A DNA stretch of 64,000 bases from Thalia democratica (Eukaryota), in the NCBI GenBank assembly GCA_965202585.1, contig OZ241829.1:33232001-33296000 (forward strand), given 5' to 3'. Shown piece after piece: positions 2,335 to 64,000 of this stretch (its first letter is position 1; every line of letters starts with the position of its first letter). A program made the position numbers and the translations under genes. Under the pieces are notes generated by a model. That model saw only the letters and a program-made list of their open reading frames with translations. It was not told the origin of the DNA and searched no databases.

Positions 2335-2755
2335 TATCAGCATAATACGGTCAAACGACGTGTAGATGTACAAGGGCGGAGCGAGTTCCAGCAGCGAAGA
2401 AATTTTTTAAACTTTCTACATTTGTCTGTCATTTTGAAAACTGTATCATACTTTTATTAATTTTGTGTATTTTAAATTAATGCTTTTTAAACTAAGGAGA
2501 TAAAAGTCGGCGGTCGTTTTTCAATAATTTTTCTATATAGGGAGTTTTAAGCATTCTTACAAATGTTAATGAATAAAAATTAATGTTTTTTTTTTCGGAA
2601 AACCAAGAATAAATTCTTAAAGTACGAAGGTAAGAGGAGAAAATGTACCGCTTACGCGGTAATTGTCTTTTTTTTACTTTCTTCTTTTTTCTCAAGCGAG
2701 TATAAATTCAACAGTCTCGAGTAATAGTGAGGGCTTTTAGTTTCTACTGCATGGC

Positions 2756-16989: not shown

Positions 16990-17990
16990 AGTTTATTTTT
17001 ATAGTGAACAGAAATTTCGATTTTGAAATTTTTATAATAATTGTGACGTTGTAATGGTATAGTTTATTGTATGATTAGCTGAATTTGAAATACGCTGTGA
17101 ATGTTATTTTATGCTTTTTAGGAAAGTTTAAAAAGGTTATTTTGGAAAAATGTTTTAAGCTATTAGAAAGCTTTTTTTAGACTGTTGGGAAAAATGTTAT
17201 AAAATACTCGTGTTTGCCGCTTCGATTTTATTTTGTTTTAGTATTTAGTTGGTTTTAATTTTGTCAAAAAAGTATTTTTGATAATGGATGCATATGTTTT
17301 GTCTTTCGCTTTTCTTGTTTAGTGTTACGTTCTTATCTGATTTTTCGATTTCTATTTTTTCTAAGTTACAAAGTTTGCAGCCGAATTTAGTATTGAATTT
17401 TAATTTTGTCCTGTTTAATACTTCCCATTTAATTTTGTAGTCTGTATTGTTATCTTTTAAGCTCCATGTGTAATTCGCTAGTTCTGTTGTGTGTCTTTTG
17501 TTAATATTGTTGAATGATGATTTGTGGTTTCTGTATCTTTGTTTAAAGGTATTTCCTGTCGATCCTATATACTGCTTTGTTGTTTTATTTGATGTTACTG
17601 TTGCTTTATAAATTATATCTGACACTAGGCATTCGTTATTTAAAGGGCAAGGTTCTTTACGGCAATTACAAAGTTTATCTTTTATGGTGCTTTTATCGTC
17701 TATATTGCTTTTGTTTAATATTTTGTTTTTGTGAGCTATTATTTTACTTCTGAAATTATTTGTGCAACTGTAAGATATTTTGATTGTGTTTCGGTTGAAT
17801 ATTTTATGGAATGGGTGGTTTTCGTCAAATGATGTAGTAATCAGGTTTAAGAATTGTTTGCCTATTTTGGAACTTATATTTAGACTGAATGGTTGGTTGA
17901 AATATATTATGTATCAATATTTTAGTTGTTTAATAGTTTTGGATAAGAACAATATTATTTTTAATGGCAAACTACTTTATTTTTCCAAAA
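16990..17990 (-). mobile_element. 5'-truncated Penelope-like element with GIY-YIG endonuclease domain
   Basis: Minus strand: YIIYFNQPFSLNISSKIGKQFLNLI...KISYSCTNN...CNCRKEPCPLNNECLVSDIIYKATV..KQYIGST..FKQRYRNHKSSF...CKLCNLEK...LNKKSE..CIH. Stop at 17245, then 3'UTR. Confidence 0.93.
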
Positions 17991-39200: not shown

Positions 39201-42200
39201 TTCAAAGTTCATCAGCAGGTCAGGTATTCGTGCAATCAGGGTCACGTGATAAAGTCGGATTCCATTTCCACGCTGGATTGCGACTCGACCAGCGGAAATT
39301 TCCAACCTCAGCTGCCTGAGTGCGTCATAAGTAAGTATGATGTTTGAAAAATATTTTCTTTTACTAAGAAGTTCAATAACGTGCTGTAAAAAGAGGTGTG
39401 CTACGCTTCAAACTATATAAAAATATGTGTTTAAAATATCAGAGTGCGTCACAAGTAAGTGCTGAAGAAATAAATAAAATTTTCCCGTTTTTATTTTTAA
39501 CCAATTTAAAAACTGACTAAAAACAAAAGTAATAAGTGTGAAATTAAATAACCTGATTTTCAGTTTTGCAAAAGAAAGAAACATTATGTACGTTACATCG
39601 TATTTATTTTACCATATGACTTAGTGAATTTAATTACTTAATTTTTCAATACAAAAAATAAATAAAAACATGTTTCAAAGTTATTAGTACAAAAATACTT
39701 GTTTAAATCAAGTGTGCACAATTTCACCACTGTTTCAAACAAACAATTTATCAAGACTGCGGAGCACCCCCCGAGTTTGCGAACACAAGCGCCCCGGCAT
39801 CCGGGTCTGTCCATTTGAACGGGAGCGTTGTGAGTTACGCATGCGAGAACGAAGGGTTCGAGATACTGCCTGAAGAAAATTACAAAGTCAGGTGCGTTGA
39901 GAACGGAACTTGGCAAGGAGAAGTCGGAAGATGCTACACAAGTATTTTTTTTATATATTGTTTTATACAAACAAAATAGTGATTAAATTTCAAATGTTTG
40001 TAACATTTATTAGCGTGGAACAATTCTTAGAAAAAAAAAATCACAATTAGAAAAATTATGTTTTCATACAAGGTTTTTTTTATATTGTAGTAACTATCCA
40101 AATTAATACCAAGTGGCAAAAGTTGTAATAATAAACTCCCAAACTCACAAACAGTGACGCGATGCAGCGAAGACGTGATCCCGACGATAGACAACTCGAA
40201 CCACGAAGTCACGGTATGGATTTTCAAAGGCGTTTACCTGCCCCGCACCCTCGTAGAGTACACGTGCAGGTCGGACTACACGATGGTGCCCGACAATTTC
40301 AGGGGCGCCGAGTGCGGTTTACACGGATCTTGGTCGTTCAAGCCAACAGGGGTTGCTGGAAAGTGCGTCAGATGTTAGTTTTCAGTTTGTATGGATGTTT
40401 TCACTAAAAAGCATGATGAGATAATGCCATCAATCCTTTATACTTATAACTAAAAAGAAAGGTAAAATTGAACATGGAAGTTTTACTCAATTTATTATCA
40501 ATATGCCATTAACTCTTTGGACTTATTTAAGTAAAAAAGCATGATAAAGTTTAAGATGTAAGTTTTACTTAACATTTGTTATTAAAAAATTCTCCCCTTA
40601 GATTTATTTAAGTAAAAAACATGGTAAAGGTAAAGGTAAAGTTAAGTTTTTTTTTATCAAAGTTTGACAACGAGTAAAAATATATATAATATGAAGTTTT
40701 CTCCAAGCTGAAATAAACTATAAAAAAGTTTTACTTTGAGTGAAAAAATTGACTTAAACCTAGAAGCAAACTTTTGTTGAAATATAAATTTTCAATTATT
40801 TTTCTACAACTTATACCAGCTTGCGGCAAGTTCCCTGCTATATCAAACGGCAAGAAAACAATTTTGGCAAGCGAAACGGTGAATTCAACAGCAATAATCG
40901 AAACCAAAGTGAAATACGAATGCGAAAGCGGAAGGACTTACACTGAAGAAGTGGCAATTGTGCAGTGCGACCTTGAAACCGGTTTGATTGATGGTAAAGT
41001 GGGAGATTGCGTGAAAGGTAAATTGATAATTTGTATACTGTTTGTTTTTATTGTGACACAAACATTATAAAACCTGCTTGGTTGATGGCAGGGTGGGGAA
41101 GAGTGTTGAAATTGATATTTCATTAAATTTATACATTTTCAGGTGATTGATTGTTAAATTTGAGCCCAGTTTAGAGTTGCTGCATATTATTATTTTGGTA
41201 ATGATTAACGTAAAATAAAACTGCCTTATAATTTAATTTTTCTTCATCACGTCTAGAGGTGAATTGTTTTTTGAAATGTCCAACAGAGTGTCCGCGAGTG
41301 AATACGACTATAAACAACGGAAAAGTGTATACTTTGCAAAAACGACCTGGTTACTTTCTTCCCGGCGACATAGTCACTTTCAAATGCGACAGCGAACACG
41401 CACTTTCAAGCGGTAACGATTCTCTCCTGTGTAGACCAGATGGTAGCTGGAACGGTGAAGACGTTGCACCCAAGTGCTATCCACGTAAGTTGTTTAAATT
41501 AACTATAATAAAATATCAGGTGTTGTGGAAATACGATTTTGCTACTTACAGACATTTAACATAAACTGAAAACAACTATTAATACAAAATTTTATTTTGA
41601 ATAAACATAAGATATTTAACTAGCAAATTACTAAATTCGGTGATAAAGGTGTTTTATGGGCATTATTTTTGCTTTTATTGCCGTTGTTTTTGTTTTCCAT
41701 TACTAATTGTAAGACAACCACTTAATAATAAGTTAATTTTAACTCTTTGTTGTTACTGATAAAAATTGAACTAAATAAAATTCTTTCCAAGCTTAAATAT
41801 TGTATACCTTAAAACACATTTTATAAAACATTGAATTTTTAATTACCTTAGAGTTATGGTCAATTTAGTAGAAAGTTTCAACGAAATACGTGTAAAAGTA
41901 TAAAAAATAGTTTGAAATTTACTTGAAGTTTTAACCTTCGATCATTATAGTTCAATTAATTTAAAATGATCTTCAATCATTAGTATTGTTCTACACGTTC
42001 AAATAACAGTTCAAATAACAAACCACAACTTTTAACTTAGCTTTGAATTAAAAATAAATATATAAAATTTGCTATCTAGATTGTCCAAAAGATTCCTTTA
42101 CTCTTCTAAATGGAAATGCTTCAAAAACTCAACAACATAGCGCTTGGAATCAGACATCTATTTACAAATGTAGTGACAAGTATACACTTGATCCAGCAGA

Positions 42201-45200
42201 TAACAACAAGAGAGATTGTGTTGAGAACGGCTTGTGGGTAGGAGATGTAGGAACTTGTTATCCTGGTGAGAAAATCGATTCTAAAAAATTGTGAAATTTA
42301 ACTGAATAAATCATATATATCAACACTTTTAAATTTATGATAAAACACGTATAAGTAGAAAAAAGATTACATGTTTTGTGAATATACAAAGTTTTATTTA
42401 CAAATAATGCCCATTTTGTGCAATAATGTATTAGAAACAAATCATGTTATGTCCAAAAACCTACATTATTTTCTTTACCATTTAAAAAAAAAATGTTTTC
42501 ACTGTAGACTTTAAATAGTCTGACATTATGATTGTTTTTTATTACGTTAAGATTAGAATGAAAATGTTTGAAAATGATTGTTTAAAACTGTAGGAGAAAT
42601 TGTATGTTTTATTAAAAATCTTTTCACAGATTGCGAATATATGAAAGTGATTAATGCCAAAACATATATAAAAGGCGAAAGTGAAATCATTACTCGTTCT
42701 GTACCTTACAAAACCGAATTGACTTACATTTGCAACAGTGGTTACAGTCCTACCGATGCTCAAGAGGTCAATTGTGGCAATGATGGTAATATTGACATTT
42801 CTGGCGTTAGATGCTACCCAGGTACATTTTAACTTTTTGATTGTTTTGGTATTTTATTAAAACAAGTGTGGAATAGATAAGTATTGCGCTGAAGTATTAC
42901 TATTTTTAGTTATAACTTCTAAATAAGTTAATTTTAACTTTTTATTGTTAGTGGTTAAAATTTAACTAAATTGAATTCTTTCTAAAAAGATCTCCTTCAT
43001 GTTTTTACAACTAAAACTTATTTTGTCCTTAATTTTCAATAACTTTTTTTATATTATTAGAAAATGTACTATGCACTATTTGCAAAACTCTTTCAATTAT
43101 ATATGACATAAGTACAAAATACAAACGATAGTTTATATATTCTTAAGATTAAAGATAATTTAATGGAAATTAAGAAAAAATTACATTACCATTGCTTTTT
43201 ACTAAGTTAGAAATAGACTTATAATATTCAAAAACGTTTTTTTTTAACTTTAGCAGAAGATCTTTTTAAAAAAAGTAACTTTGTTAACCTTTGTCAGTTA
43301 GTTTTACATAATAAAACCTGATGAACTCTGTACTTTGAAACTTTACATCTCAAAAAGTAGTTTGAGATTTACTCGAAGTTTTAACCTTCGATCCTTATGG
43401 TTCAATTAATTTAAAATGATCTTCTATCATTAGTATTGTTTAGATAAAAAAGTACAAATAAAAAACCACAACATTTAACTTCGCTTTGAATTAAAAATAA
43501 ATATATAAAATTTGCTATCTAGATTGTCCAAAAGATTCCTTTACTCTTCCAAATGGAAATGCTTCAAAAACTCAACAACATAGCGCTTGGAATCAGACAT
43601 CTATTTACAAATGTAGTGATAAGTATACACTTGATCCAGCAGATAACAACAAGAGAGATTGTGTTGAGAACGGCTTGTGGGTAGGAGATGTAGGAACTTG
43701 TTATCCTGGTGAGAAAATCGATTCTAAAAAATTGTCAAATTTAACTGAATAAATCATATATATCAACACTTTTAAATTTAAGATAAAACACGTATAAGTA
43801 GAAAAAAGATTACATGTTTTGTGAATATACAAAGTTTTATTTACAAATAATGCCCATTTTGTGCAATAATGTATTAGAAACAAATCATGTTATGTCCAAA
43901 AACCTACATTATTTTCTTTACCATTTAAAAAAAAAATGTTTTCACTGTAGACTTTAAATAGTCTGACATTATGATTGTTTTTTATTACGTTAAGATTAGA
44001 ATGAAAATGTTTGAAAATGATTGTTTAAAACTGTAGGAGAAATTGTATGTTTTATTAAAAATCTTTTCACAGATTGCGAATATATGAAAGTGATTAATGC
44101 CAAAACATATATAAAAGGCGAAAGTGAAATCATTACTCGTTCTGTACCTTACAAAACCGAATTGACTTACATTTGCAACAGTGGTTACAGTCCTACCGAT
44201 GCTCAAGAGGTCAATTGTGGCAATGATGGTAATATTGACATTTCTGGCGTTAGATGCTACCCAGGTACATTTTAACTTTTTGATTGTTTTGGTATTTTAT
44301 TAAAACAAGTGTGGAATAGATAAGTATTTCACTGAAGTATTACTATTTTTAGTTATAACTTTTAAATAAGTTAATTTTAACTTTTTATTGTTAATGGTTA
44401 AAATTTAACTAAATTAAATTCTTTCTAAAAACATCTCTTTCATGTTTTTACAACTAAAACTTACTTTGTCCTTAATTTTCAATAACTTGTTTCATATTTT
44501 TAGGAAATGTAGTATGCACTATTTGCAAAACTCTTTCAATTATATATGACATAAGTACAAAATACAAACTTTTCGTTTATATATTCTTAAGATTAAAGAT
44601 AGTTTCATGGAAAATAAGAAAAAAATACATTACCATTGCTTTTTATTAGGTTAGAAATAGACTTATAATATTCAAAAATGTTTTTTTTTAACTTTAGCAG
44701 AAGATCTATTTAAAAAAAGTGACTTTGTTAACCGTTGTCAGTTAGTTTTACATAATAAAACCTGATGAACTCTATAATTTGAAACTTTACATCTCAAAAA
44801 GTAGTTTGAGATTTACTCGAAGTTTTAACCTTCGATCCTTATGGTTCAATTAATTTAAAATGATCTTCTATCATTAGTATTGTTTAGATAAAAAAGTACA
44901 AATAAAAAACCACAACATTTAACTTCGCTTTGAATTAAAAATAAATATATAAAATTTGCAATCTAGATTGTCCAAAAGATTCCTTTACTCTTCTAAATGG
45001 AAATGCTTCAAAAACTCAACAACATAGCGCTTGGAATCAGACATCTATTTACAAATGTAGTGACAAGTATACACTTGATCCAGCAGATAACAACAAGAGA
45101 GATTGTGTTGAGAACGGCTTGTGGGTAGGAGATGTAGGAACTTGTTATCCTGGTGAGAAAATCGATTCTAAAAAATTGTGAAATTTAACTGAATAAATCA

Positions 45201-48200
45201 TATATATCAACACTTTTAAATTTATGATAAAACACGTATAAGTAGAAAAAAGATTACATGTTTTGTGAATATACAAAGTTTTATTTACAAATAATGCCCA
45301 TTTTGTGCAATAATGTATTAGAAACAAATCATATTATGTCCAAAAACCTACATTATTTTCTTTACCATTTAAAAAAAAAATGTTTTCACTGTAGACTTTA
45401 AATAGTCTGACATTATGATTGTTTTTTATTACGTTAAGATTAGAATGAAAATGTTTGAAAATGATTGTTTAAAACTGTAGGAGAAATTGTATGTTTTATT
45501 AAAAATCTTTTCACAGATTGCGAATATATGAAAGTGATTAATGCCAAAACATATATAAAAGGCGAAAGTGAAATCATTACTCGTTCTGTACCTTACAAAA
45601 CCGAATTGACTTACATTTGCAACAGTGGTTACAGTCCTACCGATGCTCAAGAGGTCAATTGTGGCAATGATGGTAATATTGACATTTCTGGCGTTAGATG
45701 CTACCCAGGTACATTTTAACTTTTTGATTGTTTTGGTATTTTATTAAAACAAGTGTGGAATAGATAAGTATTTCACTGAAGTATTACTATTTTTAGTTAT
45801 AACTTTTAAATAAGTTAATTTTAACTTTTTATTGTTAATGTTTAAAATTTAACTAAATTAAATTCTTTCTAAAAACATCTCCTTCATGTTTTTACAACTA
45901 AAACTTATTTTGTCCTTAATTTTTAATATATTTTTTCATATATTTAGGAAATGTACTATGCACTATTTGCAAAACTCTTTCAATTATATATGACATAAGT
46001 ACAAAATACAAACGTTTCGTTTATATATTCTTAAGATTAAAGATAATTTCATGGAAAATAAGAAAAAAATACATTACCATTGCTTTTTATTAGGTTAGAA
46101 ATAGACTTATAATATTCAAAAACGTTTTTTTTATATTTAGCAGAAGATCTATTTAAAAAAAGTGACTTTGTTAACCGTTGTCAGTTAGTTTTACATAATA
46201 AAACCTGATGAACTCTATAATTTGAAACTTTACATCTCAAAAAGTAGTTTGAGATTTACTCGAAGTTTTAACCTTCGATCCTTATGGTTCAATTAATTTA
46301 AAATGATCTTCTATCATTAGTATTGTTTAGATAAAAAAGTACAAATAAAAAACCACAACATTTAACTTCGCTTTGAATTAAAAATAAATATATAAAATTT
46401 GCAATCTAGATTGTCCAAAAGATTCCTTTACTCTTCTAAATGGAAATGCTTCAAAAACTCAACAACATAGCGCTTGGAATCAGACATCTATTTACAAATG
46501 TAGTGACAAGTATACACTTGATCCAGCAGATAACAACAAGAGAGATTGTGTTGAGAACGGCTTGTGGGTAGGAGATGTAGGAACTTGTTATCCTGGTGAG
46601 AAAATCGATTCTAAAAAATTGTGAAATTTAACTGAATAAATCATATATATCAACACTTTTAAATTTATGATAAAACACGTATAAGTAGAAAAAAGATTAC
46701 ATGTTTTGTGAATATACAAAGTTTTATTTACAAATAATGCCCATTTTGTGCAATAATGTATTAGAAACAAATCATGTTATGTCCAAAAACCTACATTATT
46801 TTCTTTACCATTTAAAAAAAAAATGTTTTCACTGTAGACTTTAAATAGTCTGACATTATGATTGTTTTTTATTACGTTAAGATTAGAATGAAAATGTTTG
46901 AAAATGATTGTTTAAAACTGTAGGAGAAATTGTATGTTTTATTAAAAATCTTTTCACAGATTGCGAATATATGAAAGTGATTAATGCCAAAACATATATA
47001 AAAGGCGAAAGTGAAATCATTACTCGTTCTGTACCTTACAAAACCGAATTGACTTACATTTGCAACAGTGGTTACAGTCCTACCGATGCTCAAGAGGTCA
47101 ATTGTGGCAATGATGGTAATATTGACATTTCTGGCGTTAGATGCTACCCAGGTACATTTTAACTTTTTGATTGTTTTGGTATTTTATTAAAACAAGTGTG
47201 GAATAGATAAGTATTTCACTGAAGTATTACTATTTTTAGTTATAACTTTTAAATAAGTTAATTTTAACTTTTTATTGTTAATGGTTAAAATTTAACTAAA
47301 TTAAATTCTTTCTAAAAAGATCTCCTTCATGTTTTTACAACTAAAACTTATTTTGTCCTTAATTTTTAATATATTTTTTCATATATTTAGGAAATGTACT
47401 ATGCACTATTTGCAAAACTCTTTCAATTATATATGACATAAGTACAAAATACAAACGTTTCGTTTATATATTCTTAAGATTAAAGATAATTTCATGGAAA
47501 ATAAGAAAAAAATACATTACCATTGCTTTTTATTAGGTTAGAAATAGACTTATAATATTCAAAAACGTTTTTTTTATATTTAGCAGAAGATCTATTTAAA
47601 AAAAGTGACTTTGTTAACCGTTGTCAGTTAGTTTTACATAATAAAACCTGATGAACTCTATAATTTGAAACTTTACATCTCAAAAAGTAGTTTGAGATTT
47701 ACTCGAAGTTTTAACCTTCGATCCTTATGGTTCAATTAATTTAAAATGATCTTCTATCATTAGTATTGTTTAAGTACAAATAACAAACCACAACATTTAA
47801 CTTCGCTTTGAATTAAAAATAAATATATAAAATTTGCTATCTAGATTGTCCAAAAGATTCCTTTACTCTTCTAAATGGAAATGCTTCAAAAACTCAACAA
47901 CATAGCGCTTGGAATCAGACATCTATTTACAAATGTAGTGACAAGTATACACTTGATCCAGCAGATAACAACAAGAGAGATTGTGTTGAGAACGGCTTGT
48001 GGGTAGGAGATGTAGGAACTTGTTATCCTGGTGAGAAAATCGATTCTAAAAAATTGTGAAATTTAACTGAATAAATCATATATATCAACACTTTTAAATT
48101 TAAGATAAAACACGTATAAGTAGAAAAAAGATTACATGTTTTGTGAATATACAAAGTTTTATTTACAAATAATGCCCATTTTGTGCAATAATGTATTAGA

Positions 48201-51200
48201 AACAAATCATGTTATGTCCAAAAACCTACATTATTTTCTTTACCATTTAAAAAAAAAATGTTTTCACTGTAGACTTTAAATAGTCTGACATTATGATTGT
48301 TTTTTATTACGTTAAGATTAGAATGAAAATGTTTGAAAATGATTGTTTAAAACTGTAGGAGAAATTGTATGTTTTATTAAAAATCTTTTCACAGATTGCG
48401 AATATATGAAAGTGATTAATGCCAAAACATATATAAAAGGCGAAAGTGAAATCATTACTCGTTCTGTACCTTACAAAACCGAATTGACTTACATTTGCAA
48501 CAGTGGTTACAGTCCTACCGATGCTCAAGAGGTCAATTGTGGCAATGATGGTAATATTGACATTTCTGGCGTTAGATGCTACCCAGGTACATTTTAACTT
48601 TTTGATTGTTTTGGTATTTTATTAAAACAAGTGTGGAATAGATAAGTATTTCACTGAAGTATTACTATTTTTAGTTATAACTTTTAAATAAGTTAATTTT
48701 AACTTTTTATTGTTAATGGTTAAAATTTAACTAAATTAAATTCTTTCTAAAAACATCTCTTTCATGTTTTTACAACTAAAACTTACTTTGTCCTTAATTT
48801 TCAATAACTTGTTTCATATTTTTAGGAAATGTAGTATGCACTATTTGCAAAACTCTTTCAATTATATATGACATAAGTACAAAATATAAACTTTTCGTTT
48901 ATATATTCTTAAGATTAAAGATAATTTCATGGAAATTAAGAAAAAAATACATTACCATTGCTTTTTATTAGGTTAGAAATAGACTTATAATATTCAAAAA
49001 TGTTTTTTTTTTAATTTAGCAGAAGATCTATTTAAAAAAAGTGACTTTGTTAACCGTTGTCAGTTAGTTTTACATAATAAAACCTGATGAACTCTATAAT
49101 TTGAAACTTTACATCTCAAAAAGTAGTTTGAGATTTACTCGAAGTTTTAACCTTCGATCCTTATGGTTCAATTAATTTAAAATGATCTTCTATCATTAGT
49201 ATTGTTTAGATAAAAAAGTACAAATAAAAAACCACAACATTTAACTTCGCTTTGAATTAAAAATAAATATATAAAATTTGCTATCTAGATTGTCCAAAAG
49301 ATTCCTTTACTCTTCTAAATGGAAATGCTTCAAAAACTCAACAACATAGCGCTTGGAATCAGACATCTATTTACAAATGTAGTGACAAGTATACACTTGA
49401 TCCAGCAGATAACAACAAGAGAGATTGTGTTGAGAACGGCTTGTGGGTAGGAGATGTAGGAACTTGTTATCCTGGTGAGAAAATCGATTCTAAAAAATTG
49501 TGAAATTTAACTGAATAAATCATATATATCAACACTTTTAAATTTAAGATAAAACACGTATAAGTAGAAAAAAGATTACATGTTTTGTGAATATACAAAG
49601 TTTTATTTACAAATAATGCCCATTTTGTGCAATAATGTATTAGAAACAAATCATGTTATGTCCAAAAACCTACATTATTTTCTTTACCATTTAAAAAAAA
49701 AATGTTTTCACTGTAGACTTTAAATAGTCTGACATTATGATTGTTTTTTATTACGTTAAGATTAGAATGAAAATGTTTGAAAATGATTGTTTAAAACTGT
49801 AGGAGAAATTGTATGTTTTATTAAAAATCTTTTCACAGATTGCGAATATATGAAAGTGATTAATGCCAAAACATATATAAAAGGCGAAAGTGAAATCATT
49901 ACTCGTTCTGTACCTTACAAAACCGAATTGACTTACATTTGCAACAGTGGTTACAGTCCTACCGATGCTCAAGAGGTCAATTGTGGCAATGATGGTAATA
50001 TTGACATTTCTGGCGTTAGATGCTACCCAGGTACATTTTAACTTTTTGATTGTTTTGGTATTTTATTAAAACAAGTGTGGAATAGATAAGTATTTCACTG
50101 AAGTATTACTATTTTTAGTTATAACTTTTAAATAAGTTAATTTTAACTTTTTATTGTTAATGGTTAAAATTTAACTAAATTAAATTCTTTCTAAAAACAT
50201 CTCTTTCATGTTTTTACAACTAAAACTTACTTTGTCCTTAATTTTCAATAACTTGTTTCATATTTTTAGGAAATGTAGTATGCACTATTTGCAAAACTCT
50301 TTCAATTATATATGACATAAGTACAAAATATAAACTTTTCGTTTATATATTCTTAAGATTAAAGATAATTTCATGGAAATTAAGAAAAAAATACATTACC
50401 ATTGCTTTTTATTAGGTTAGAAATAGACTTATAATATTCAAAAATGTTTTTTTTTTAATTTAGCAGAAGATCTATTTAAAAAAAGTGACTTTGTTAACCG
50501 TTGTCAGTTAGTTTTACATAATAAAACCTGATGAACTCTATAATTTGAAACTTTACATCTCAAAAAGTAGTTTGAGATTTACTCGAAGTTTTAACCTTCG
50601 ATCCTTATGGTTCAATTAATTTAAAATGATCTTCTATCATTAGTATTGTTTAGATAAAAAAGTACAAATAAAAAACCACAACATTTAACTTCGCTTTGAA
50701 TTAAAAATAAATATATAAAATTTGCTATCTAGATTGTCCAAAAGATTCCTTTACTCTTCTAAATGGAAATGCTTCAAAAACTCAACAACATAGCGCTTGG
50801 AATCAGACATCTATTTACAAATGTAGTGACAAGTATACACTTGATCCAGCAGATAACAACAAGAGAGATTGTGTTGAGAACGGCTTGTGGGTAGGAGATG
50901 TAGGAACTTGTTATCCTGGTGAGAAAATCGATTCTAAAAAATTGTGAAATTTAACTGAATAAATCATATATATCAACACTTTTAAATTTAAGATAAAACA
51001 CGTATAAGTAGAAAAAAGATTACATGTTTTGTGAATATACAAAGTTTTATTTACAAATAATGCCCATTTTGTGCAATAATGTATTAGAAACAAATCATGT
51101 TATGTCCAAAAACCTACATTATTTTCTTTACCATTTAAAAAAAAAATGTTTTCACTGTAGACTTTAAATAGTCTGACATTATGATTGTTTTTTATTACGT

Positions 51201-54200
51201 TAAGATTAGAATGAAAATGTTTGAAAATGATTGTTTAAAACTGTAGGAGAAATTGTATGTTTTATTAAAAATCTTTTCACAGATTGCGAATATATGAAAG
51301 TGATTAATGCTAAAACATATATAAAAGGCGAAAGTGAAATCATTACTCGTTCTGTACCTTACAAAACCGAATTGACTTACATTTGCAACAGTGGTTACAG
51401 TCCTACCGATGCTCAAGAGGTCAATTGTGGCAATGATGGTAATATTGACATTTCTGGCGTTAGATGCTACCCAGGTACATTTTAACTTTTTGATTGTTTT
51501 GGTATTTTATTAAAACAAGTGTGGAATAGATAAGTATTTCACTGAAGTATTACTATTTTTAGTTATAACTTTTAAATAAGTTAATTTTAACTTTTTATTG
51601 TTAATGTTTAAAATTTAACTAAATTAAATTCTTTCTAAAAACATCTCCTTCATGTTTTTACAACTAAAACTTATTTTGTCCTTAATTTTTAATATATTTT
51701 TTCATATATTTAGGAAATGTACTATGCACTATTTGCAAAACTCTTTCAATTATATATGACATAAGTACAAAATACAAACGTTTCGTTTATATATTCTTAA
51801 GATTAAAGATAATTTCATGGAAAATAAGAAAAAAATACATTACCATTGCTTTTTATTAGGTTAGAAATAGACTTATAATATTCAAAAACGTTTTTTTTAT
51901 ATTTAGCAGAAGATCTATTTAAAAAAAGTGACTTTGTTAACCGTTGTCAGTTAGTTTTACATAATAAAACCTGATGAACTCTATAATTTGAAACTTTACA
52001 TCTCAAAAAGTAGTTTGAGATTTACTCGAAGTTTTAACCTTCGATCCTTATGGTTCAATTAATTTAAAATGATCTTCTATCATTAGTATTGTTTAGATAA
52101 AAAAGTACAAATAACAAACCACAACATTTAACTTCGCTTTGAATTAAAAATAAATATATAAAATTTGCTATCTAGATTGTCCAAAAGATTCCTTTACTCT
52201 TCTAAATGGAAATGCTTCAAAAACTCAACAACATAGCGCTTGGAATCAGACATCTATTTACAAATGTAGTGACAAGTATACACTTGATCCAGCAGATAAC
52301 AACAAGAGAGATTGTGTTGAGAACGGCTTGTGGGTAGGAGATGTAGGAACTTGTTATCCTGGTGAGAAAATCGATTCTAAAAAATTGTGAAATTTAACTG
52401 AATAAACCATATATATCAACACTTTTAAATTTAAGATAAAACACGTATAAGTAGAAAAAAGATTACATGTTTTGTGAATATACAAAGTTTTATTTACAAA
52501 TAATGCCCATTTTGTGCAATAATGTATTAGAAACAAATCATGTTATGTCCAAAAACCTACATTATTTTCTTTACCATTTAAAAAAAAATGTTTTCACTGT
52601 AGACTTTAAATAGTCTGACATTATGATTGTTTTTTATTACGTTAAGATTAGAATGAAAATGTTTGAAAATGATTGTTTAAAACTGTAGGAGAAATTGTAT
52701 GTTTTATTAAAAATCTTTTCACAGATTGCGAATATATGAAAGTGATTAATGCCAAAACATATATAAAAGGCGAAAGTGAAATCATTACTCGTTCTGTACC
52801 TTACAAAACCGAATTGACTTACATTTGCAACAGTGGTTACAGTCCTACCGATGCTCAAGAGGTCAATTGTGGCAATGATGGTAATATTGACATTTCTGGC
52901 GTTAGATGCTACCCAGGTACATTTTAACTTTTTGATTGTTTTGGTATTTTATTAAAACAAGTGTGGAATAGATAAGTATTTCACTGAAGTATTACTATTT
53001 TTAGTTATAACTTTTAAATAAGTTAATTTTAACTTTTTATTGTTAATGGTTAAAATTTAACTAAATTAAATTCTTTCTAAAAAGATCTCCTTCATGTTTT
53101 TACAACTAAAACTTATTTTGTCCTTAATTTTTAATATATTTTTTCATATATTTAGGAAATGTACTATGCACTATTTGCAAAACTCTTTCAATTATATATG
53201 ACATAAGTACAAAATACAAACGTTTCGTTTATATATTCTTAAGATTAAAGATAATTTCATGGAAAATAAGAAAAAAATACATTACCATTGCTTTTTATTA
53301 GGTTAGAAATAGACTTATAATATTCAAAAACGTTTTTTTTATATTTAGCAGAAGATCTATTTAAAAAAAGTGACTTTGTTAACCGTTGTCAGTTAGTTTT
53401 ACATAATAAAACCTGATGAACTCTATAATTTGAAACTTTACATCTCAAAAAGTAGTTTGAGATTTACTCGAAGTTTTAACCTTCGATCCTTATGGTTCAA
53501 TTAATTTAAAATGATCTTCTATCATTAGTATTGTTTAGATAAAAAAGTACAAATAACAAACCACAACATTTAACTTCGCTTTGAATTAAAAATAAATATA
53601 TAAAATTTGCTATCTAGATTGTCCAAAAGATTCCTTTACTCTTCTAAATGGAAATGCTTCAAAAACTCAACAACATAGCGCTTGGAATCAGACATCTATT
53701 TACAAATGTAGTGACAAGTATACACTTGATCCAGCAGATAACAACAAGAGAGATTGTGTTGAGAACGGCTTGTGGGTAGGAGATGTAGGAACTTGTTATC
53801 CTGGTGAGAAAATCGATTCTAAAAAATTGTGAAATTTAACTGAATAAATCATATATATCAACACTTTTAAATTTAAGATAAAACACGTATAAGTAGAAAA
53901 AAGATTACATGTTTTGTGAATATACAAAGTTTTATTTACAAATAATGCCCATTTTGTGCAATAATGTATTAGAAACAAATCATGTTATGTCCAAAAACCT
54001 ACATTATTTTCTTTACCATTTAAAAAAAAAATGTTTTCACTGTAGACTTTAAATAGTCTGACATTATGATTGTTTTTTATTACGTTAAGATTAGAATGAA
54101 AATGTTTGAAAATGATTGTTTAAAACTGTAGGAGAAATTGTATGTTTTATTAAAAATCTTTTCACAGATTGCGAATATATGAAAGTGATTAATGCCAAAA

Positions 54201-57200
54201 CATATATAAAAGGCGAAAGTGAAATCATTACTCGTTCTGTACCTTACAAAACCGAATTGACTTACATTTGCAACAGTGGTTACAGTCCTACCGATGCTCA
54301 AGAGGTCAATTGTGGCAATGATGGTAATATTGACATTTCTGGCGTTAGATGCTACCCAGGTACATTTTAACTTTTTGATTGTTTTGGTATTTTATTAAAA
54401 CAAGTGTGGAATAGATAAGTATTTCACTGAAGTATTACTATTTTTAGTTATAACTTTTAAATAAGTTAATTTTAACTTTTTATTGTTAATGGTTAAAATT
54501 TAACTAAATTAAATTCTTTCTAAAAACATCTCTTTCATGTTTTTACAACTAAAACTTACTTTGTCCTTAATTTTCAATAACTTGTTTCATATTTTTAGGA
54601 AATGTAGTATGCACTATTTGCAAAACTCTTTCAATTATATATGACATAAGTACAAAATATAAACTTTTCGTTTATATATTCTTAAGATTAAAGATAATTT
54701 CATGGAAATTAAGAAAAAAATACATTACCATTGCTTTTTATTAGGTTAGAAATAGACTTATAATATTCAAAAATGTTTTTTTTTTAATTTAGCAGAAGAT
54801 CTATTTAAAAAAAGTGACTTTGTTAACCGTTGTCAGTTAGTTTTACATAATAAAACCTGATGAACTCTATAATTTGAAACTTTACATCTCAAAAAGTAGT
54901 TTGAGATTTACTCGAAGTTTTAACCTTCGATCCTTATGGTTCAATTAATTTAAAATGATCTTCTATCATTAGTATTGTTTAGATAAAAAAGTACAAATAA
55001 AAAACCACAACATTTAACTTCGCTTTGAATTAAAAATAAATATATAAAATTTGCTATCTAGATTGTCCAAAAGATTCCTTTACTCTTCTAAATGGAAATG
55101 CTTCAAAAACTCAACAACATAGCGCTTGGAATCAGACATCTATTTACAAATGTAGTGACAAGTATACACTTGATCCAGCAGATAACAACAAGAGAGATTG
55201 TGTTGAGAACGGCTTGTGGGTAGGAGATGTAGGAACTTGTTATCCTGGTGAGAAAATCGATTCTAAAAAATTGTCAAATTTAACTGAATAAATCATATAT
55301 ATCAACACTTTTAAATTTAAGATAAAACACGTATAAGTAGAAAAATGATTACATGTTTTGTGAATATACAAAGTTTTATTTACAAATAATGCCCATTTTG
55401 TGCAATAATGTATTAGAAACAAATCATGTTATGTCCAAAAACCTACATTATTTTCTTTACCATTTAAAAAAAAAATGTTTTCACTGTAGACTTTAAATAG
55501 TCTGACATTATGATTGTTTTTTATTACGTTAAGATTAGAATGAAAATGTTTGAAAATGATTGTTTAAAACTGTAGGAGAAATTGTATGTTTTATTAAAAA
55601 TCTTTTCACAGATTGCGAATATATGAAAGTGATTAATGCCAAAACATATATAAAAGGCGAAAGTGAAATCATTACTCGTTCTGTACCTTACAAAACCGAA
55701 TTGACTTACATTTGCAACAGTGGTTACAGTCCTACCGATGCTCAAGAGGTCAATTGTGGCAATGATGGTAATATTGACATTTCTGGCGTTAGATGCTACC
55801 CAGGTACATTTTAACTTTTTGATTGTTTTGGTATTTTATTAAAACAAGTGTGGAATAGATAAGTATTTCACTGAAGTATTACTATTTTTAGTTATAACTT
55901 TTAAATAAGTTAATTTTAACTTTTTATTGTTAATGGTTAAAATTTAACTAAATTAAATTCTTTCTAAAAACATCTCTTTCATGTTTTTACAACTAAAACT
56001 TACTTTGTCCTTAATTTTCAATAACTTGTTTCATATTTTTAGGAAATGTAGTATGCACTATTTGCAAAACTCTTTCAATTATATATGACATAAGTACAAA
56101 ATATAAACTTTTCGTTTATATATTCTTAAGATTAAAGATAATTTCATGGAAATTAAGAAAAAAATACATTACCATTGCTTTTTATTAGGTTAGAAATAGA
56201 CTTATAATATTCAAAAATGTTTTTTTTTTAATTTAGCAGAAGATCTATTTAAAAAAAGTGACTTTGTTAACCGTTGTCAGTTAGTTTTACATAATAAAAC
56301 CTGATGAACTCTATAATTTGAAACTTTACATCTCAAAAAGTAGTTTGAGATTTACTCGAAGTTTTAACCTTCGATCCTTATGGTTCAATTAATTTAAAAT
56401 GATCTTCTATCATTAGTATTGTTTAGATAAAAAAGTACAAATAACAAACCACAACATTTAACTTCGCTTTGAATTAAAAATAAATATATAAAATTTGCTA
56501 TCTAGATTGTCCAAAAGATTCCTTTACTCTTCTAAATGGAAATGCTTCAAAAACTCAACAACATAGCGCTTGGAATCAGACATCTATTTACAAATGTAGT
56601 GACAAGTATACACTTGATCCAGCAGATAACAACAAGAGAGATTGTGTTGAGAACGGCTTGTGGGTAGGAGATGTAGGAACTTGTTATCCTGGTGAGAAAA
56701 TCGATTCTAAAAAATTGTGAAATTTAACTGAATAAATCATATATATCAACACTTTTAAATTTAAGATAAAACACGTATAAGTAGAAAAAAGATTACATGT
56801 TTTGTGAATATACAAAGTTTTATTTACAAATAATGCCCATTTTGTGCAATAATGTATTAGAAACAAATCATGTTATGTCCAAAAACCTACATTATTTTCT
56901 TTACCATTTAAAAAAAAAATGTTTTCACTGTAGACTTTAAATAGTCTGACATTATGATTGTTTTTTATTACGTTAAGATTAGAATGAAAATGTTTGAAAA
57001 TGATTGTTTAAAACTGTAGGAGAAATTGTATGTTTTATTAAAAATCTTTTCACAGATTGCGAATATATGAAAGTGATTAATGCCAAAACATATATAAAAG
57101 GCGAAAGTGAAATCATTACTCGTTCTGTACCTTACAAAACCGAATTGACTTACATTTGCAACAGTGGTTACAGTCCTACCGATGCTCAAGAGGTCAATTG

Positions 57201-60200
57201 TGGCAATGATGGTAATATTGACATTTCTGGCGTTAGATGCTACCCAGGTACATTTTAACTTTTTGATTGTTTTGGTATTTTATTAAAACAAGTGTGGAAT
57301 AGATAAGTATTTCACTGAAGTATTACTATTTTTAGTTATAACTTTTAAATAAGTTAATTTTAACTTTTTATTGTTAATGTTTAAAATTTAACTAAATTAA
57401 ATTCTTTCTAAAAACATCTCCTTCATGTTTTTACAACTAAAACTTATTTTGTCCTTAATTTTTAATATATTTTTTCATATATTTAGGAAATGTACTATGC
57501 ACTATTTGCAAAACTCTTTCAATTATATATGACATAAGTACAAAATACAAACGTTTCGTTTATATATTCTTAAGATTAAAGATAATTTCATGGAAAATAA
57601 GAAAAAAATACATTACCATTGCTTTTTATTAGGTTAGAAATAGACTTATAATATTCAAAAACGTTTTTTTTATATTTAGCAGAAGATCTATTTAAAAAAA
57701 GTGACTTTGTTAACCGTTGTCAGTTAGTTTTACATAATAAAACCTGATGAACTCTATAATTTGAAACTTTACATCTCAAAAAGTAGTTTGAGATTTACTC
57801 GAAGTTTTAACCTTCGATCCTTATGGTTCAATTAATTTAAAATGATCTTCTATCATTAGTATTGTTTAGATAAAAAAGTACAAATAACAAACCACAACAT
57901 TTAACTTCGCTTTGAATTAAAAATAAATATATAAAATTTGCTATCTAGATTGTCCAAAAGATTCCTTTACTCTTCTAAATGGAAATGCTTCAAAAACTCA
58001 ACAACATAGCGCTTGGAATCAGACATCTATTTACAAATGTAGTGACAAGTATACACTTGATCCAGCAGATAACAACAAGAGAGATTGTGTTGAGAACGGC
58101 TTGTGGGTAGGAGATGTAGGAACTTGTTATCCTGGTGAGAAAATCGATTCTAAAAAATTGTGAAATTTAACTGAATAAATCATATATATCAACACTTTTA
58201 AATTTAAGATAAAACACGTATAAGTAGAAAAAAGATTACATGTTTTGTGAATATACAAAGTTTTATTTACAAATAATGCCCATTTTGTGCAATAATGTAT
58301 TAGAAACAAATCATGTTATGTCCAAAAACCTACATTATTTTCTTTACCATTTAAAAAAAAAATGTTTTCACTGTAGACTTTAAATAGTCTGACATTATGA
58401 TTGTTTTTTATTACGTTAAGATTAGAATGAAAATGTTTGAAAATGATTGTTTAAAACTGTAGGAGAAATTGTATGTTTTATTAAAAATCTTTTCACAGAT
58501 TGCGAATATATGAAAGTGATTAATGCCAAAACATATATAAAAGGCGAAAGTGAAATCATTACTCGTTCTGTACCTTACAAAACCGAATTGACTTACATTT
58601 GCAACAGTGGTTACAGTCCTACCGATGCTCAAGAGGTCAATTGTGGCAATGATGGTAATATTGACATTTCTGGCGTTAGATGCTACCCAGGTACATTTTA
58701 ACTTTTTGATTGTTTTGGTATTTTATTAAAACAAGTGTGGAATAGATAAGTATTTCACTGAAGTATTACTATTTTTAGTTATAACTTTTAAATAAGTTAA
58801 TTTTAACTTTTTATTGTTAATGTTTAAAATTTAACTAAATTAAATTCTTTCTAAAAACATCTCCTTCATGTTTTTACAACTAAAACTTATTTTGTCCTTA
58901 ATTTTTAATATATTTTTTCATATATTTAGGAAATGTACTATGCACTATTTGCAAAACTCTTTCAATTATATATGACATAAGTACAAAATACAAACGTTTC
59001 GTTTATATATTCTTAAGATTAAAGATAATTTCATGGAAAATAAGAAAAAAATACATTACCATTGCTTTTTATTAGGTTAGAAATAGACTTATAATATTCA
59101 AAAACTTTTTTTTTATATTTAGCAGAAGATCTATTTAAAAAAAGTGACTTTGTTAACCGTTGTCAGTTAGTTTTACATAATAAAACCTGATGAACTCTAT
59201 AATTTGAAACTTTACATCTCAAAAAGTAGTTTGAGATTTACTCGAAGTTTTAACCTTCGATCCTTATGGTTCAATTAATTTAAAATGATCTTCTATCATT
59301 AGTATTGTTTAGATAAAAAAGTACAAATAACAAACCACAACATTTAACTTCGCTTTGAATTAAAAATAAATATATAAAATTTGCTATCTAGATTGTCCAA
59401 AAGATTCCTTTACTCTTCTAAATGGAAATGCTTCAAAAACTCAACAACATAGCGCTTGGAATCAGACATCTATTTACAAATGTAGTGACAAGTATACACT
59501 TGATCCAGCAGATAACAACAAGAGAGATTGTGTTGAGAACGGCTTGTGGGTAGGAGATGTAGGAACTTGTTATCCTGGTGAGAAAATCGATTCTAAAAAA
59601 TTGTGAAATTTAACTGAATAAACCATATATATCAACACTTTTAAATTTAAGATAAAACACGTATAAGTAGAAAAAAGATTACATGTTTTGTGAATATACA
59701 AAGTTTTATTTACAAATAATGCCCATTTTGTGCAATAATGTATTAGAAACAAATCATGTTATGTCCAAAAACCTACATTATTTTCTTTACCATTTAAAAA
59801 AAAATGTTTTCACTGTAGACTTTAAATAGTCTGACATTATGATTGTTTTTTATTACGTTAAGATTAGAATGAAAATGTTTGAAAATGATTGTTTAAAACT
59901 GTAGGAGAAATTGTATGTTTTATTAAAAATCTTTTCACAGATTGCGAATATATGAAAGTGATTAATGCCAAAACATATATAAAAGGCGAAAGTGAAATCA
60001 TTACTCGTTCTGTACCTTACAAAACCGAATTGACTTACATTTGCAACAGTGGTTACAGTCCTACCGATGCTCAAGAGGTCAATTGTGGCAATGATGGTAA
60101 TATTGACATTTCTGGCGTTAGATGCTACCCAGGTACATTTTAACTTTTTGATTGTTTTGGTATTTTATTAAAACAAGTGTGGAATAGATAAGTATTTCAC

Positions 60201-63018
60201 TGAAGTATTACTATTTTTAGTTATAACTTTTAAATAAGTTAATTTTAACTTTTTATTGTTAATGGTTAAAATTTAACTAAATTAAATTCTTTCTAAAAAG
60301 ATCTCCTTCATGTTTTTACAACTAAAACTTACTTTGTCCTTAATTTTCAATAACTTGTTTCATATTTTTAGGAAATGTAGTATGCACTATTTGCAAAACT
60401 CTTTCAATTATATATGACATAAGTACAAAATACAAACTTTTCGTTTATATATTCTTAAGATTAAAGATAATTTAATGGAAATTAAGAAAAAACTACATTA
60501 TAATTGCTTTTTATTAGGTTAGAAATAGACTTATAATATTCAAAAACGTTTTTTTTTTAATTTAGCAGAAGATTTATTTAAAAAAAGTAACTTTGTTAAC
60601 CTTTGTCAGTTAGTTTTACATAATAAAACATGATGAACTCTATAATTTGAAACTTTACATCTCAAAAAGTAGTTTGAGATTTACTCGAAGTTTTAACCTT
60701 CGATCCTTATGGTTCAATTAATTTAAAATGATCTTCTATCATTAGTATTGTTTAGATAAAAAAGTACAAATAACAAACCACAACATTTAACTTCGCTTTG
60801 AATTAAAAATAAATATATAAAATTTGCTATCTAGATTGTCCAAAAGATTCCTTTACTCTTCTAAATGGAAATGCTTCAAAAACTCAACAACATAGCGCTT
60901 GGAATCAGACATCTATTTACAAATGTAGTGACAAGTATACACTTGATCCAGCAGATAACAACAAGAGAGATTGTGTTGAGAACGGCTTGTGGGTAGGAGA
61001 TGTAGGAACTTGTTATCCTGGTGAGAAAATCGATTCTAAAAAATTGTGAAATTTAACTGAATAAATCATATATATCAACACTTTTAAATTTAAGATAAAA
61101 CACGTATAAGTAGAAAAAATATTACATGTTTTGTGAATATACAAAGTTTTATTTACAAATAATGCCCATTTTGTGCAATAATGTATTAGAAACAAATCAT
61201 GTTATGTCCAAAAACCTACATTATTTTCTTTACCATTTAAAAAAAAATGTTTTCACTGTAGACTTTAAATAGTCTGACATTATGATTGTTTTTTATTACG
61301 TTAAGATTAGAATGAAAATGTTTGAAAATGATTGTTTAAAACTGTAGGAGAAATTGTATGTTTTATTAAAAATCTTTTCACAGATTGCGAATATATGAAA
61401 GTGATTAATGCCAAAACATATATAAAAGGCGAAAGTGAAATCATTACTCGTTCTGTACCTTACAAAACCGAATTGACTTACATTTGCAACAGTGGTTACA
61501 GTCCTACCGATGCTCAAGAGGTCAATTGTGGCAATGATGGTAATATTGACATTTCTGGCGTTAGATGCTACCCAGGTACATTTTAACTTTTTGATTGTTT
61601 TGGCATTTTATTAAAACAAGTGTGGAATAGATAAGTATTTCACTGAAGTATTACTATTTTTAGTTATAACTTTTAAATAAGTTAATTTTAACTTTTTATT
61701 GTTAATGTTTAAAATTTAACTAAATTAAATTCTTTCTAAAAACATCTCCTTCATGTTTTTACAACTAAAACTTATTTTGTCCTTAATTTTTAATATATTT
61801 TTTCATATATTTAGGAAATGTACTATGCACTATTTGCAAAACTCTTTCAATTATATATGACATAAGTACAAAATACAAACGTTTCGTTTATATATTCTTA
61901 AGATTAAAGATAATTTCATGGAAAATAAGAAAAAAATACATTACCATTGCTTTTTATTAGGTTAGAAATAGACTTATAATATTCAAAAACGTTTTTTTTA
62001 AATTTAGCAGAAGATCTATTTAAAAAAAGTGACTTTGTTAACCGTTGTCAGTTAGTTTTACATAATAAAACCTGATGAACTCTATAATTTGAAACTTTAC
62101 ATCTCAAAAAGTAGTTTGAGATTTACTCGAAGTTTTAACCTTCGATCCTTATGGTTCAATTAATTTAAAATGATCTTCTATCATTAGTATTGTTTAGATA
62201 AAAAAGTACAAATAACAAACCACAACATTTAACTTCGCTTTGAATTAAAAATAAATATATAAAATTTGCTATCTAGATTGTCCAAAAGATTCCTTTACTC
62301 TTCTAAATGGAAATGCTTCAAAAACTCAACAACATAGCGCTTGGAATCAGACATCTATTTACAAATGTAGTGACAAGTATACACTTGATCCAGCAGATAA
62401 CAACAAGAGAGATTGTGTTGAGAACGGCTTGTGGGTAGGAGATGTAGGAACTTGTTATCCTGGTGAGAAAATCGATTCTAAAAAATTGTGAAATTTAACT
62501 GAATAAATCATATATATCAACACTTTTAAATTTAAGATAAAACACGTATAAGTAGAAAAAAGATTACATGTTTTGTGAATATACAAAGTTTTATTTACAA
62601 ATAATGCCCATTTTGTGCAATAATGTATTAGAAACAAATCATGTTATGTCCAAAAACCTACATTATTTTCTTTACCATTTAAAAAAAAAATGTTTTCACT
62701 GTAGACTTTAAATAGTCTGACATTATGATTGTTTTTTATTACGTTAAGATTAGAATGAAAATGTTTGAAAATGATTGTTTAAAACTGTAGGAGAAATTGT
62801 ATGTTTTATTAAAAATCTTTTCACAGATTGCGAATATATGAAAGTGATTAATGCCAAAACATATATAAAAGGCGAAAGTGAAATCATTACTCGTTCTGTA
62901 CCTTACAAAACCGAATTGACTTACATTTGCAACAGTGGTTACAGTCCTACCGATGCTCAAGAGGTCAATTGTGGCAATGATGGTAATATTGACATTTCTG
63001 GCGTTAGATGCTACCCAG
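30222..63018 (+). CDS. Giant multi-Sushi (CCP/SCR) domain protein, at least 48 CCP modules; 3' end not in window
   Basis: Putative first coding exon 30222-30272 (MKCSPCHLVDVVWQIML, low confidence), then 18 unique and 30 tandem CCP exons. All are phase 1-1, 183-219 nt, each with 4 Cys. No terminal exon or TM segment seen. Confidence 0.9.
30536..41484 (+). CDS. 18 unique Sushi/CCP exons (S1-S18)
   Basis: 30536-30727, 31407-31589, 32012-32209, 32526-32729, 34050-34241, 34607-34813, 35105-35302, 35528-35728, 35932-36129, 36373-36576, 37268-37468, 37682-37879, 38729-38929, 39121-39330, 39756-39941, 40155-40373, 40820-41017, 41287-41484. Each is open in frame with the C..C..C..(W)..C pattern. Confidence 0.92.
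30986..31028 (-). ncRNA. Minimal type I hammerhead ribozyme, antisense in the S1-S2 intron, U16.1 replaced by C (probably inactive)
   Basis: Minus strand: GGCTGA-CTGATGA-GTCCT aata AGGAC-GAAA-CCGG-C-C-TCAGTC. Stems I and II are well paired; stem III would be palindromic ACCGGT but reads ACCGGC. Confidence 0.8.
33883..33920 (+). pseudogene. Truncated relic copy of the 5' end of exon S5
   Basis: TAAGAATGTAACGAAAACCCAGAGGTGGCAA vs CAGAATGCAACGAAACACCAGAGGTGGCAA at 34047; the upstream intron sequence is also similar. Confidence 0.75.
38379..38480 (+). repeat. Short dispersed repeat family, copy 6 (intronic)
   Basis: GGTGGTGCACGACTCGATAACCGAAAGG..CAGGTCCTTAG..GAGCGC..TCGTTCAATAAAC. Confidence 0.8.
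42080..63018 (+). CDS. 30 tandem Sushi exons: 15 x exon A (186 nt) and 15 x exon B (192 nt)
   Basis: A starts: 42080, 43523, 44967, 46410, 47845, 49289, 50733, 52176, 53618, 55062, 56506, 57949, 59392, 60835, 62277 (DCPKDSFTLLNGNASKTQQHSAWNQTSIYKCSDKYTLDPADNNKRDCVENGLWVGDVGTCYP). B starts: 42630, 44073, 45517, 46960, 48395, 49839, 51283, 52725, 54168, 55612, 57056, 58499, 59941, 61384, 62827 (DCEYMKVINAKTYIKGESEIITRSVPYKTELTYICNSGYSPTDAQEVNCGNDGNIDISGVRCYP). All AG/GT sites appear intact. Confidence 0.93.
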
Positions 63019-63880
63019 GTACATTTTAACTTTTTGATTGTTTTGGTATTTTATTAAAACAAGTGTGGAATAGATAAGTATTTCACTGAAGTATTACTAT
63101 TTTTAGTTATAACTTTTAAATAAGTTAATTTTAACTTTTTATTGTTAATGATTAAAATTTAACTAAATTAAATTCTTTCTAAAAACATCTCCTTCATGTT
63201 TTTACAAAGTTAGAAACTAGTTTGAAAGCTAAAATATTATATAGTTTAAACCACTTTTTATAAAACATTTAAATTTTAATTACTTTTAGAGTTATAGTCA
63301 GTTTAGTAGAAAGTTTCAAAAATAGACTGACAAAAAATTATTTTCCATTGCCGACTTCCTTAATATGTTGAAATTTTCTTAAAATCGATTTTGTCCTTTT
63401 TTTTTTTTATAACTTAATTCAAATTTTTAGGAAATATACTTTGCATTTTTTGTAAAACTTGTACAATGAAAAAAACTATGACATAAGTTTAAAACACAAC
63501 CGTTTCGTTTATATATTCTTAAGATTAAAGATATTTTCATAGAAAAAAATACATTATCATTGCTTTTTACTAAACTAGAAATAGACTGGTAGTATTTGAA
63601 AACGTTTTTCTTTTAACTTTAGCAGAAAATATATTTTAAAAAAATCTTTTTTAATCTTTATCTGTTAGTCCCTACGTAACAAAACTTGTTGAAATCTATA
63701 CTTTAAAACGTTATATCTCAAATATGCGTTTAAAATTAACTTGAAGTTTTAACCTTCAATGCTTATAGTTCAATTAACTTAACATGACTTTTAAACCTTA
63801 GTATTGTTTAGATGAAAAAGTACACAAAAAAAATTACAACTTTTAACATATTTTTTGATTAAAAAAAATATACAAAATTT

Positions 63881-63900
63881 GCTATCTATATTTTCCATCG
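63881..63900 (+). pseudogene. Dead 16th copy of exon A (acceptor lost, exon truncated)
   Basis: GCTATCTATATTTTCCATCG in place of GCTATCTAGATTGTCCAAAA: AG is AT, the Cys codon TGT is TTT, and homology ends within about 10 nt. Confidence 0.8.
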
Positions 63901-64000
63901 ATTTTAACATTTTTCTTTGTTAATTCTTAAATTTTTATATATTTGATTCATTTTACTTAATTTTTAGTATCACTGTTACCCCTAACTCTTACCCTTGGTC

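Follow-up and report, generated by a model that had tools for sequence, protein, structure and literature searches.

A tandem array of near-identical two-exon Sushi units in a putative giant CCP protein gene of the pelagic tunicate Thalia democratica

The stretch of DNA analysed here, referred to as the window, comprises 64,000 nt of contig OZ241829.1 of Thalia democratica, and all coordinates given are positions in this window. The window is AT-rich, with a GC content of about 25%, and a large part of it is occupied by a tandem array whose unit contains two short exons, termed A and B, each of which encodes one Sushi module, also called the complement control protein (CCP) module. The array directly follows a series of diverged Sushi exons, and the gene lies on the plus strand. 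The likely interpretation, in our view, is a real coding macrosatellite: exons repeated in tandem within a single gene, which in this pelagic tunicate encodes a giant extracellular protein with many CCPs. The coordinates of the features are collected in Table 1.

The autocorrelation of the region 38001-64000 has its main peak at a lag of 1443 and its second peak at a lag of 5773, which corresponds to four units. Self-BLAST with the unit at 50001-51443 returned 14 full and two partial copies, which are arranged head-to-tail on the plus strand between 41902 and 63207 with 97.3-100% identity. Tandem Repeats Finder (TRF), run with a longest period of 500, reported no repeat in the array region, because longer periods are invisible to it. 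The units are 1,443-1,444 bp in length, apart from one of 1,435 bp. A preliminary description of this DNA had proposed about 21.6 kb of 1,443-bp units; the period is as proposed, while the array is slightly shorter (21.3 kb, or 14.8 units). Its central claim, a 15-copy array of near-identical two-exon Sushi pairs at 42080-63018, could be confirmed to the base. A search of Rfam gave no match in the whole window or in one array unit, and no intronic small RNA of a known family was found.

Each of the 15 units is composed of an A exon of 186 nt, an intron of 363 or 364 nt, a B exon of 192 nt and an intron of 693-702 nt. The bases ag and gt border the exons at 60 of 60 array splice sites, and all 30 exons are phase 1-1 with lengths divisible by three. 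The two exons of a unit add up to 378 nt, or 126 codons, and the frame is kept at any copy number; the joined array frame runs through 1,890 codons with no stop. The intact exons and splice sites and the product of about 1,890 residues thus agree with what had been described. Among the 5,670 array exon bases, three differ: one Leu-to-Pro and one silent change in the A exon of unit 2, and one silent change in the B exon of unit 7. The GC content is 37% in the array exons versus 21-22% in the array introns. Stops occur in the introns at a frequency of 0.083 per codon (one per 12 codons), and a single open stretch of 62-64 codons would arise by chance with a probability of about 0.4%; open array exons by chance are excluded.

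Judged by their sequences, A and B are both Sushi/CCP domains. The Pfam Sushi model (PF00084), whose gathering cut-off is 20.7 bits, is matched by each module on its own, A with 22.6 bits and B with 23.0 bits; the A-B-A segment gives three matched stretches with an E-value of 1.8e-12. When A and B are aligned together with the 18 modules upstream (20 modules), the four cysteines C1, C34, C48 and C61 are invariant. Successive modules are joined by a three-residue YPD linker, both from A to B and from B to A. Two N-glycosylation sequons, NAS and NQT, are present in 15 of 15 A modules, as previously noted, and there are none in the B modules. A Trp between Cys3 and Cys4 is common in CCPs and not obligatory. 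It is found in A (NGLWVG), while B has an Ile in its place (DGNIDIS), and the upstream module at 40822-41016 likewise carries an Ile there. Along its length, the A-B pair can be aligned to CCP2-3 of complement factor H (E 2.9e-5); the matches to CD55 and beta2-glycoprotein I are weaker. For B, the AlphaFold2 prediction from a single sequence was uninformative, with a predicted local distance difference test (pLDDT) score of 46, while the prediction from an alignment of the 20 module types of the window reached 88, with the aligned CCPs guiding the model. Nearly all of its 50 best PDB matches are CCPs (CD46, CD55, E-selectin, factor H, CR2 and beta2-GPI), with template modelling (TM) scores of 0.6-0.72; the Foldseek E-values are only 6e-3 and weaker because the query of 63 residues is so short. 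With these caveats, the model supports the CCP beta-sandwich fold for B.

Upstream of the array, 18 diverged Sushi/CCP modules, each encoded by one exon, are located at 30536-41484 on the plus strand. All of these exons have phase-1 ag acceptors, and all but one have phase-1 gt donors; 15 of the 18 modules are individually above the Pfam Sushi cut-off. Their GC content is 47% versus 25.5% in their introns, and the array exons, at 37%, are clearly more AT-rich than these 18 unique Sushi exons of the same gene. The closest relative of A within the window is the module at 39756-39941, also of 186 nt, with 41% identity (47% over the C-terminal half), while that of B is the module at 40820-41017, with 30% identity and also without the Trp. 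Consequently, 48 or more CCP modules of a single gene, amounting to about 3,090 residues, are encoded in the window; the 3' end of this gene lies beyond it.

The way in which the units differ is informative about the history of the array. The variable columns among the units number 2 of 186 in the A exon, 6 of 364 in the A-to-B intron and 1 of 192 in the B exon. In the B-to-A intron, 45 of 702 columns are variable, with 10 further indel columns, and the variation is clustered at unit positions of about 800-1260 (about 460 bp). There are no indels in the 30 array exons, compared with 11 indel columns in the array introns, and the exons are less variable than all introns taken together (3/378 versus 51/1066 columns, p = 1e-4). 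Two unit types, alpha and beta, can be distinguished, which follow each other in the order alpha-alpha-beta-beta and constitute a 4-unit higher-order repeat. The blocks u5-u8 and u9-u12 are 0-0.3% apart, and the edge unit u1 is 2.0-2.3% from the others. Homogenisation by unequal exchange classically leaves this signature, namely a higher-order repeat whose edge has diverged, and the ordered alpha/beta pattern is one that mis-assembly could hardly produce. The diverged intron copy downstream of the array did not polarise the alpha and beta intron types, the comparison ending in a tie of 6 to 7.

Support independent of the assembly comes from other contigs, and the sequence is also present in marine plankton runs. 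In a word-indexed search with the A-B pair, the only close database protein was an open reading frame (ORF) across an unspliced B exon, from two ENA metagenome contigs. One of these two metagenome contigs, L003 (1,542 bp), has identical ends of 99 bp, so that it forms a closed repeat of 1,443 bp. Its identity to a window unit is 99.87%, and the A and B peptides that it encodes match those of the window at 100%. A head-to-tail repeat of the same period has therefore been recovered a second time, in a different assembly and from a different sample. In addition, a plankton RNA contig of 258 nt (X12) leads from B (42722-42819) directly to A (42078-42237), with two ambiguous letters at the joint. 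This junction links the last base of the B exon (42821) to the first base of the A exon (42080) across an excised GT..AG intron, and the A part is identical to the window. Since such a join is impossible from unspliced genomic DNA, at least two adjacent array exons are spliced together in vivo, and the array is at least partly transcribed and spliced.

The word depth of Logan contigs was considered for two runs from 2025, X1 and X3, and should be read as an order of magnitude, not as a copy count. In both runs, single flank contigs show depths of 65-125, compared with 880-1,540 for array contigs and up to 2,600-3,200 for the A-exon bins. The array/flank ratio for single contigs is then about 10-20, which is of the order expected of a many-copy array. 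The ratios are unequal in X1 and X3, which is at most a hint that the copy number may vary between individuals, the contig depths being unreliable as counts. At 42175-42178, one base is left out and one inserted in 61% of the A-exon depth of X1; the two changes compensate each other, and SDKY becomes STEY in frame. This variant occurs in none of the 15 A exons of the window and is not found in X3. Therefore, at least one other version of an A-type array exists, allelic or paralogous, and the finding points to a second A-type array that is homogenised to a different module variant.

These data also bear on whether the array is real while its copy count of 15 and the order of its units are products of the assembly, through expansion, collapse or mixing of haplotypes. 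The evidence on copies does come from Logan contigs, whose depth is no copy number, and the variant seen in X1 means that another version of the array could be mixed in. However, the complete absence of this variant from the window counts against the mixing of haplotypes, the depth ratio is of the right order, and neither collapse nor arbitrary expansion would yield diagnostic variants in a regular 4-unit pattern next to a diverged edge unit. We regard an origin of the count and order in the assembly as unlikely.

With a genuine coding array as the likely reading, a mechanism can be proposed. Since both exons are phase 1-1 and divisible by three, exchange within the introns adds or removes whole modules and leaves the frame intact. 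Unequal crossing-over or gene conversion would expand, contract and homogenise the array, and repeated events of this kind, the latest in 4-unit steps, may have built it. The recent turnover that had been suggested for this locus is supported by the 4-unit higher-order repeat, its nearly identical blocks, the diverged edge unit and the A-exon variant of X1. Translation of the array would give a rod in which A and B alternate over 30 modules, separated by no more than three-residue linkers; it would follow the 18 diverged CCPs and, with two N-glycan sites in each A module, carry 30 predicted sites. A CCP module is about 3.5-4 nm long. Taking this value, the rod may reach a length of the order of 100 nm, and its role might be that of a long glycosylated stalk, or of a scaffold that presents one binding surface many times over.

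Several observations weigh against this interpretation. Compared with the A-to-B intron, variability in the exons is not significantly lower (3/378 versus 6/364 columns, p = 0.33). Consequently, the idea that the near-identity of the exons proves purifying selection was rejected: this intron is nearly as uniform, so that the uniformity within the array reflects homogenisation and is no proof of constraint, which is better supported by the comparison across relatives than within the array. The support from RNA consists of the one contig, with a depth of 3.8, which covers the B-to-A junction only and whose B part has 4 mismatches to the window in 98 bases. Hydrophobicity scans for a signal-peptide first exon gave nothing convincing, and the start, signal peptide, C-terminus and anchor of the protein are not established within the window. 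Finally, exon 13 of the upstream series, as assembled, has no frame-keeping GT donor, and unless splicing omits the exon or its T-run is misassembled, the assembled haplotype may be a null allele.

The last point leads to the possibility that the locus is a non-functional allele or a decaying gene, in which the frame is lost at exon 13 and the array is untranslated from this haplotype. Whichever of its three GT donors is used, exon 13 has a length of 1 mod 3, and the lower GC content of the array exons compared with the upstream exons (37% versus 47%) could be taken in the same sense. If the T-run at 38935-38939 is shortened by one base, the exon becomes 210 or 219 nt long and phase 1-1. The one-base omission at 38935 is found in contigs of both X1 and X3 at about the depth of one haplotype, which suggests a polymorphic frameshift. 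The defect may thus be a homopolymer error, a polymorphic frameshift allele or a skipped exon. However, an assembly error is plausible in a homopolymer of five T, and skipping of the phase 1-1 exon would leave the frame intact. Moreover, not one of the 30 array exons is damaged by an indel or a stop, against the 11 indel columns in the introns, and spliced RNA exists. Loss of function at this locus is therefore improbable in our estimation. That the array is a non-coding satellite, seeded by chance from a Sushi exon pair, is hardly credible, since it lies in frame and phase right after 18 same-strand Sushi exons, has kept every splice site and reading frame, and has a spliced B-to-A junction in RNA.

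Relatives of the modules are scarce in the databases. A HMMER search with the A module against 1.84 billion representatives found no close relative; its matches were generic multi-Sushi proteins, with about 30-35% identity, and a small number of short A-type ORFs, with 39-61% identity, on marine metagenome contigs of at most 1.2 kb. None of the marine metagenome contigs with an A-type ORF carries a B-type exon or an array. The motif H-x-S-W-N-Q-T-A-V-Y-K-C is common to A and these ORFs, the positions of Cys, Trp and the NxT sequon being conserved, and the similarity at the nucleotide level is limited to the A exon, as the flanking introns do not align. On short AT-rich marine contigs (L001, L002, L005-L009), several of them from Tara Oceans samples, no fewer than five diverged versions of the A-type CCP were seen, which suggests that this module subtype may be restricted to one lineage of the plankton. 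Exact-pattern scans of JGI metagenome contigs for words of the A and B exons gave no matches, and a search of the available literature found no description of Sushi-domain arrays in thaliaceans.

The closest architectural match to the array is the kringle IV type 2 (KIV-2) repeat of human LPA, and the closest by domain type is human CR1 (CD35). In LPA, a two-exon unit of about 5.6 kb, with exons of 160 and 182 bp that together encode one kringle, is present in up to 40 copies (PMC11201333). Both systems have a frame-preserving tandem unit of two short exons and two introns in near-identical copies, and in both the array can make up most of the coding sequence. However, each exon of the present array encodes one whole CCP and the unit two domains, the unit is four times smaller (1.44 kb), and the domain family and the organism are unrelated. 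The likeness to LPA noted in the preliminary description thus extends to the two-exon, near-identical units and not to the relation between exons and domains. It should also be noted that copy-number polymorphism is documented for LPA, whereas for the present array it is a possibility.

As for CR1, its C3b/C4b-binding domain is built of CCP modules. This domain is encoded by a tandem 18-kb unit of eight exons, which occurs in one to four copies and was generated by non-allelic homologous recombination (PMC5937907). CR1 is therefore a described CCP-based, copy-variable tandem unit, contrary to the earlier suggestion that there is no known equivalent. Both loci show an intragenic tandem duplication of exons that alters the length of a CCP protein and keeps the frame, but the unit described here has two CCPs and 15 copies of 97.7-100% identity, compared with the few copies of the much larger CR1 unit. 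The similarity to CR1 and the other genes of the regulators of complement activation (RCA) is that of CCPs in general (factor H at the E-value given above, and about 30-35% identity to many multi-Sushi proteins) and implies no orthology.

Among tunicates, vCRL1 of Ciona and CCP proteins of Botryllus are described as highly variable between individuals and as proposed markers of individuality (PMC5465252, citing Kurn 2007 and Sommer 2012). These receptors are likewise tunicate CCP-domain proteins and are taken as a functional lead only; they are short, with few CCPs, and vary by sequence and splicing, in contrast to the homogenised tandem array described here. A more far-reaching reading is that the tunicate repeatedly builds giant CCP proteins from homogenised exon-intron arrays, and that haplotype-private modules (SDKY versus STEY) together with the numbers of units act as an individual label or as an adjustable multivalent binder. 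We hold this to be rather improbable. If it were true, a recognition system, be it for self and non-self, gametes or particles, would be diversified by the concerted evolution of tandem exons and not by point polymorphism.

With the array taken as a genuine coding array, coding arrays of the LPA and CR1 type would exist outside vertebrates, and near-identical, frame-neutral units of exons and introns would let unequal exchange alter how long a protein is. Since collapse and mis-annotation easily affect loci of this kind, the present one is a useful test case for the assembly and annotation of tunicate genomes. If the copy number or module type varies between individuals, the locus could provide a tractable invertebrate-chordate model for the relation of repeat number to reach or avidity.

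Table 1. Features of the putative multi-CCP gene in the 64,000-nt window
Feature	Position	Strand	Remarks
Candidate first coding exon	30222..30274	+	ATG, 17 codons + 1 base, GTGAGT donor of phase 1; weak signal-peptide character, unconfirmed
Upstream Sushi exons 1-6	30536-30727, 31407-31589, 32012-32209, 32526-32729, 34050-34241, 34607-34813	+	
Upstream Sushi exons 7-12	35105-35302, 35528-35728, 35932-36129, 36373-36576, 37268-37468, 37682-37879	+	
Upstream Sushi exons 13-18	38729-38948(?), 39121-39330, 39756-39941, 40155-40373, 40820-41017, 41287-41484	+	
Sushi exon 13	38729..38948	+	205, 211 or 220 nt by three GT donors, all 1 mod 3
Array 5' edge, pieces of B-to-A intron before first A exon	41727-41790 (decayed, 87.5%), 41902-42079 (intact)	+	Self-BLAST
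Tandem array	41902..63207	+	14.8 units, span 21.3 kb; autocorrelation, self-BLAST
Array coding span	42080..63018	+	15 A-B exon pairs, 30 CCP modules, 1,890 residues
A exon starts, units 1-8	42080, 43523, 44967, 46410, 47845, 49289, 50733, 52176	+	
A exon starts, units 9-15	53618, 55062, 56506, 57949, 59392, 60835, 62277	+	
B exon starts, units 1-8	42630, 44073, 45517, 46960, 48395, 49839, 51283, 52725	+	
B exon starts, units 9-15	54168, 55612, 57056, 58499, 59941, 61384, 62827	+	Last end 63018
Representative A exon	50733..50918	+	CCP, four Cys, conserved Trp, sequons NAS and NQT
Representative B exon	51283..51474	+	CCP, four Cys, Ile replacing the usual Trp, no sequon
Array 3' edge	63019..63207	+	First 189 bases of a 16th B-to-A intron
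Diverged copy of B-to-A intron	63390..63897	+	78% identity; A-exon acceptor ag changed to at, no A exon behind
Possible start of next exon	63967..64000	+	After tttttag; cut by the window end, unconfirmed

The genes located further upstream in the window are unrelated and lie on the minus strand. They include a sulfotransferase exon at 12086-12367 (PF17784, E 5.6e-26) and an actin-family segment at 6534-6761 (PF00022, E 3.6e-15). An ORF of 126 residues at 17245-17625, also on the minus strand, contains the motif Y-I-G-S-T...R-N-H and was considered as a GIY-YIG nuclease, an idea that was dropped as Pfam gave no supporting match. At 1947-2334, a GC-rich tandem repeat of 43 bp lies in AT-rich surroundings, with nine copies, 95% matches and a higher-order period of 128 bp, and the long ORFs on both strands at this place are artefacts of the repeat.

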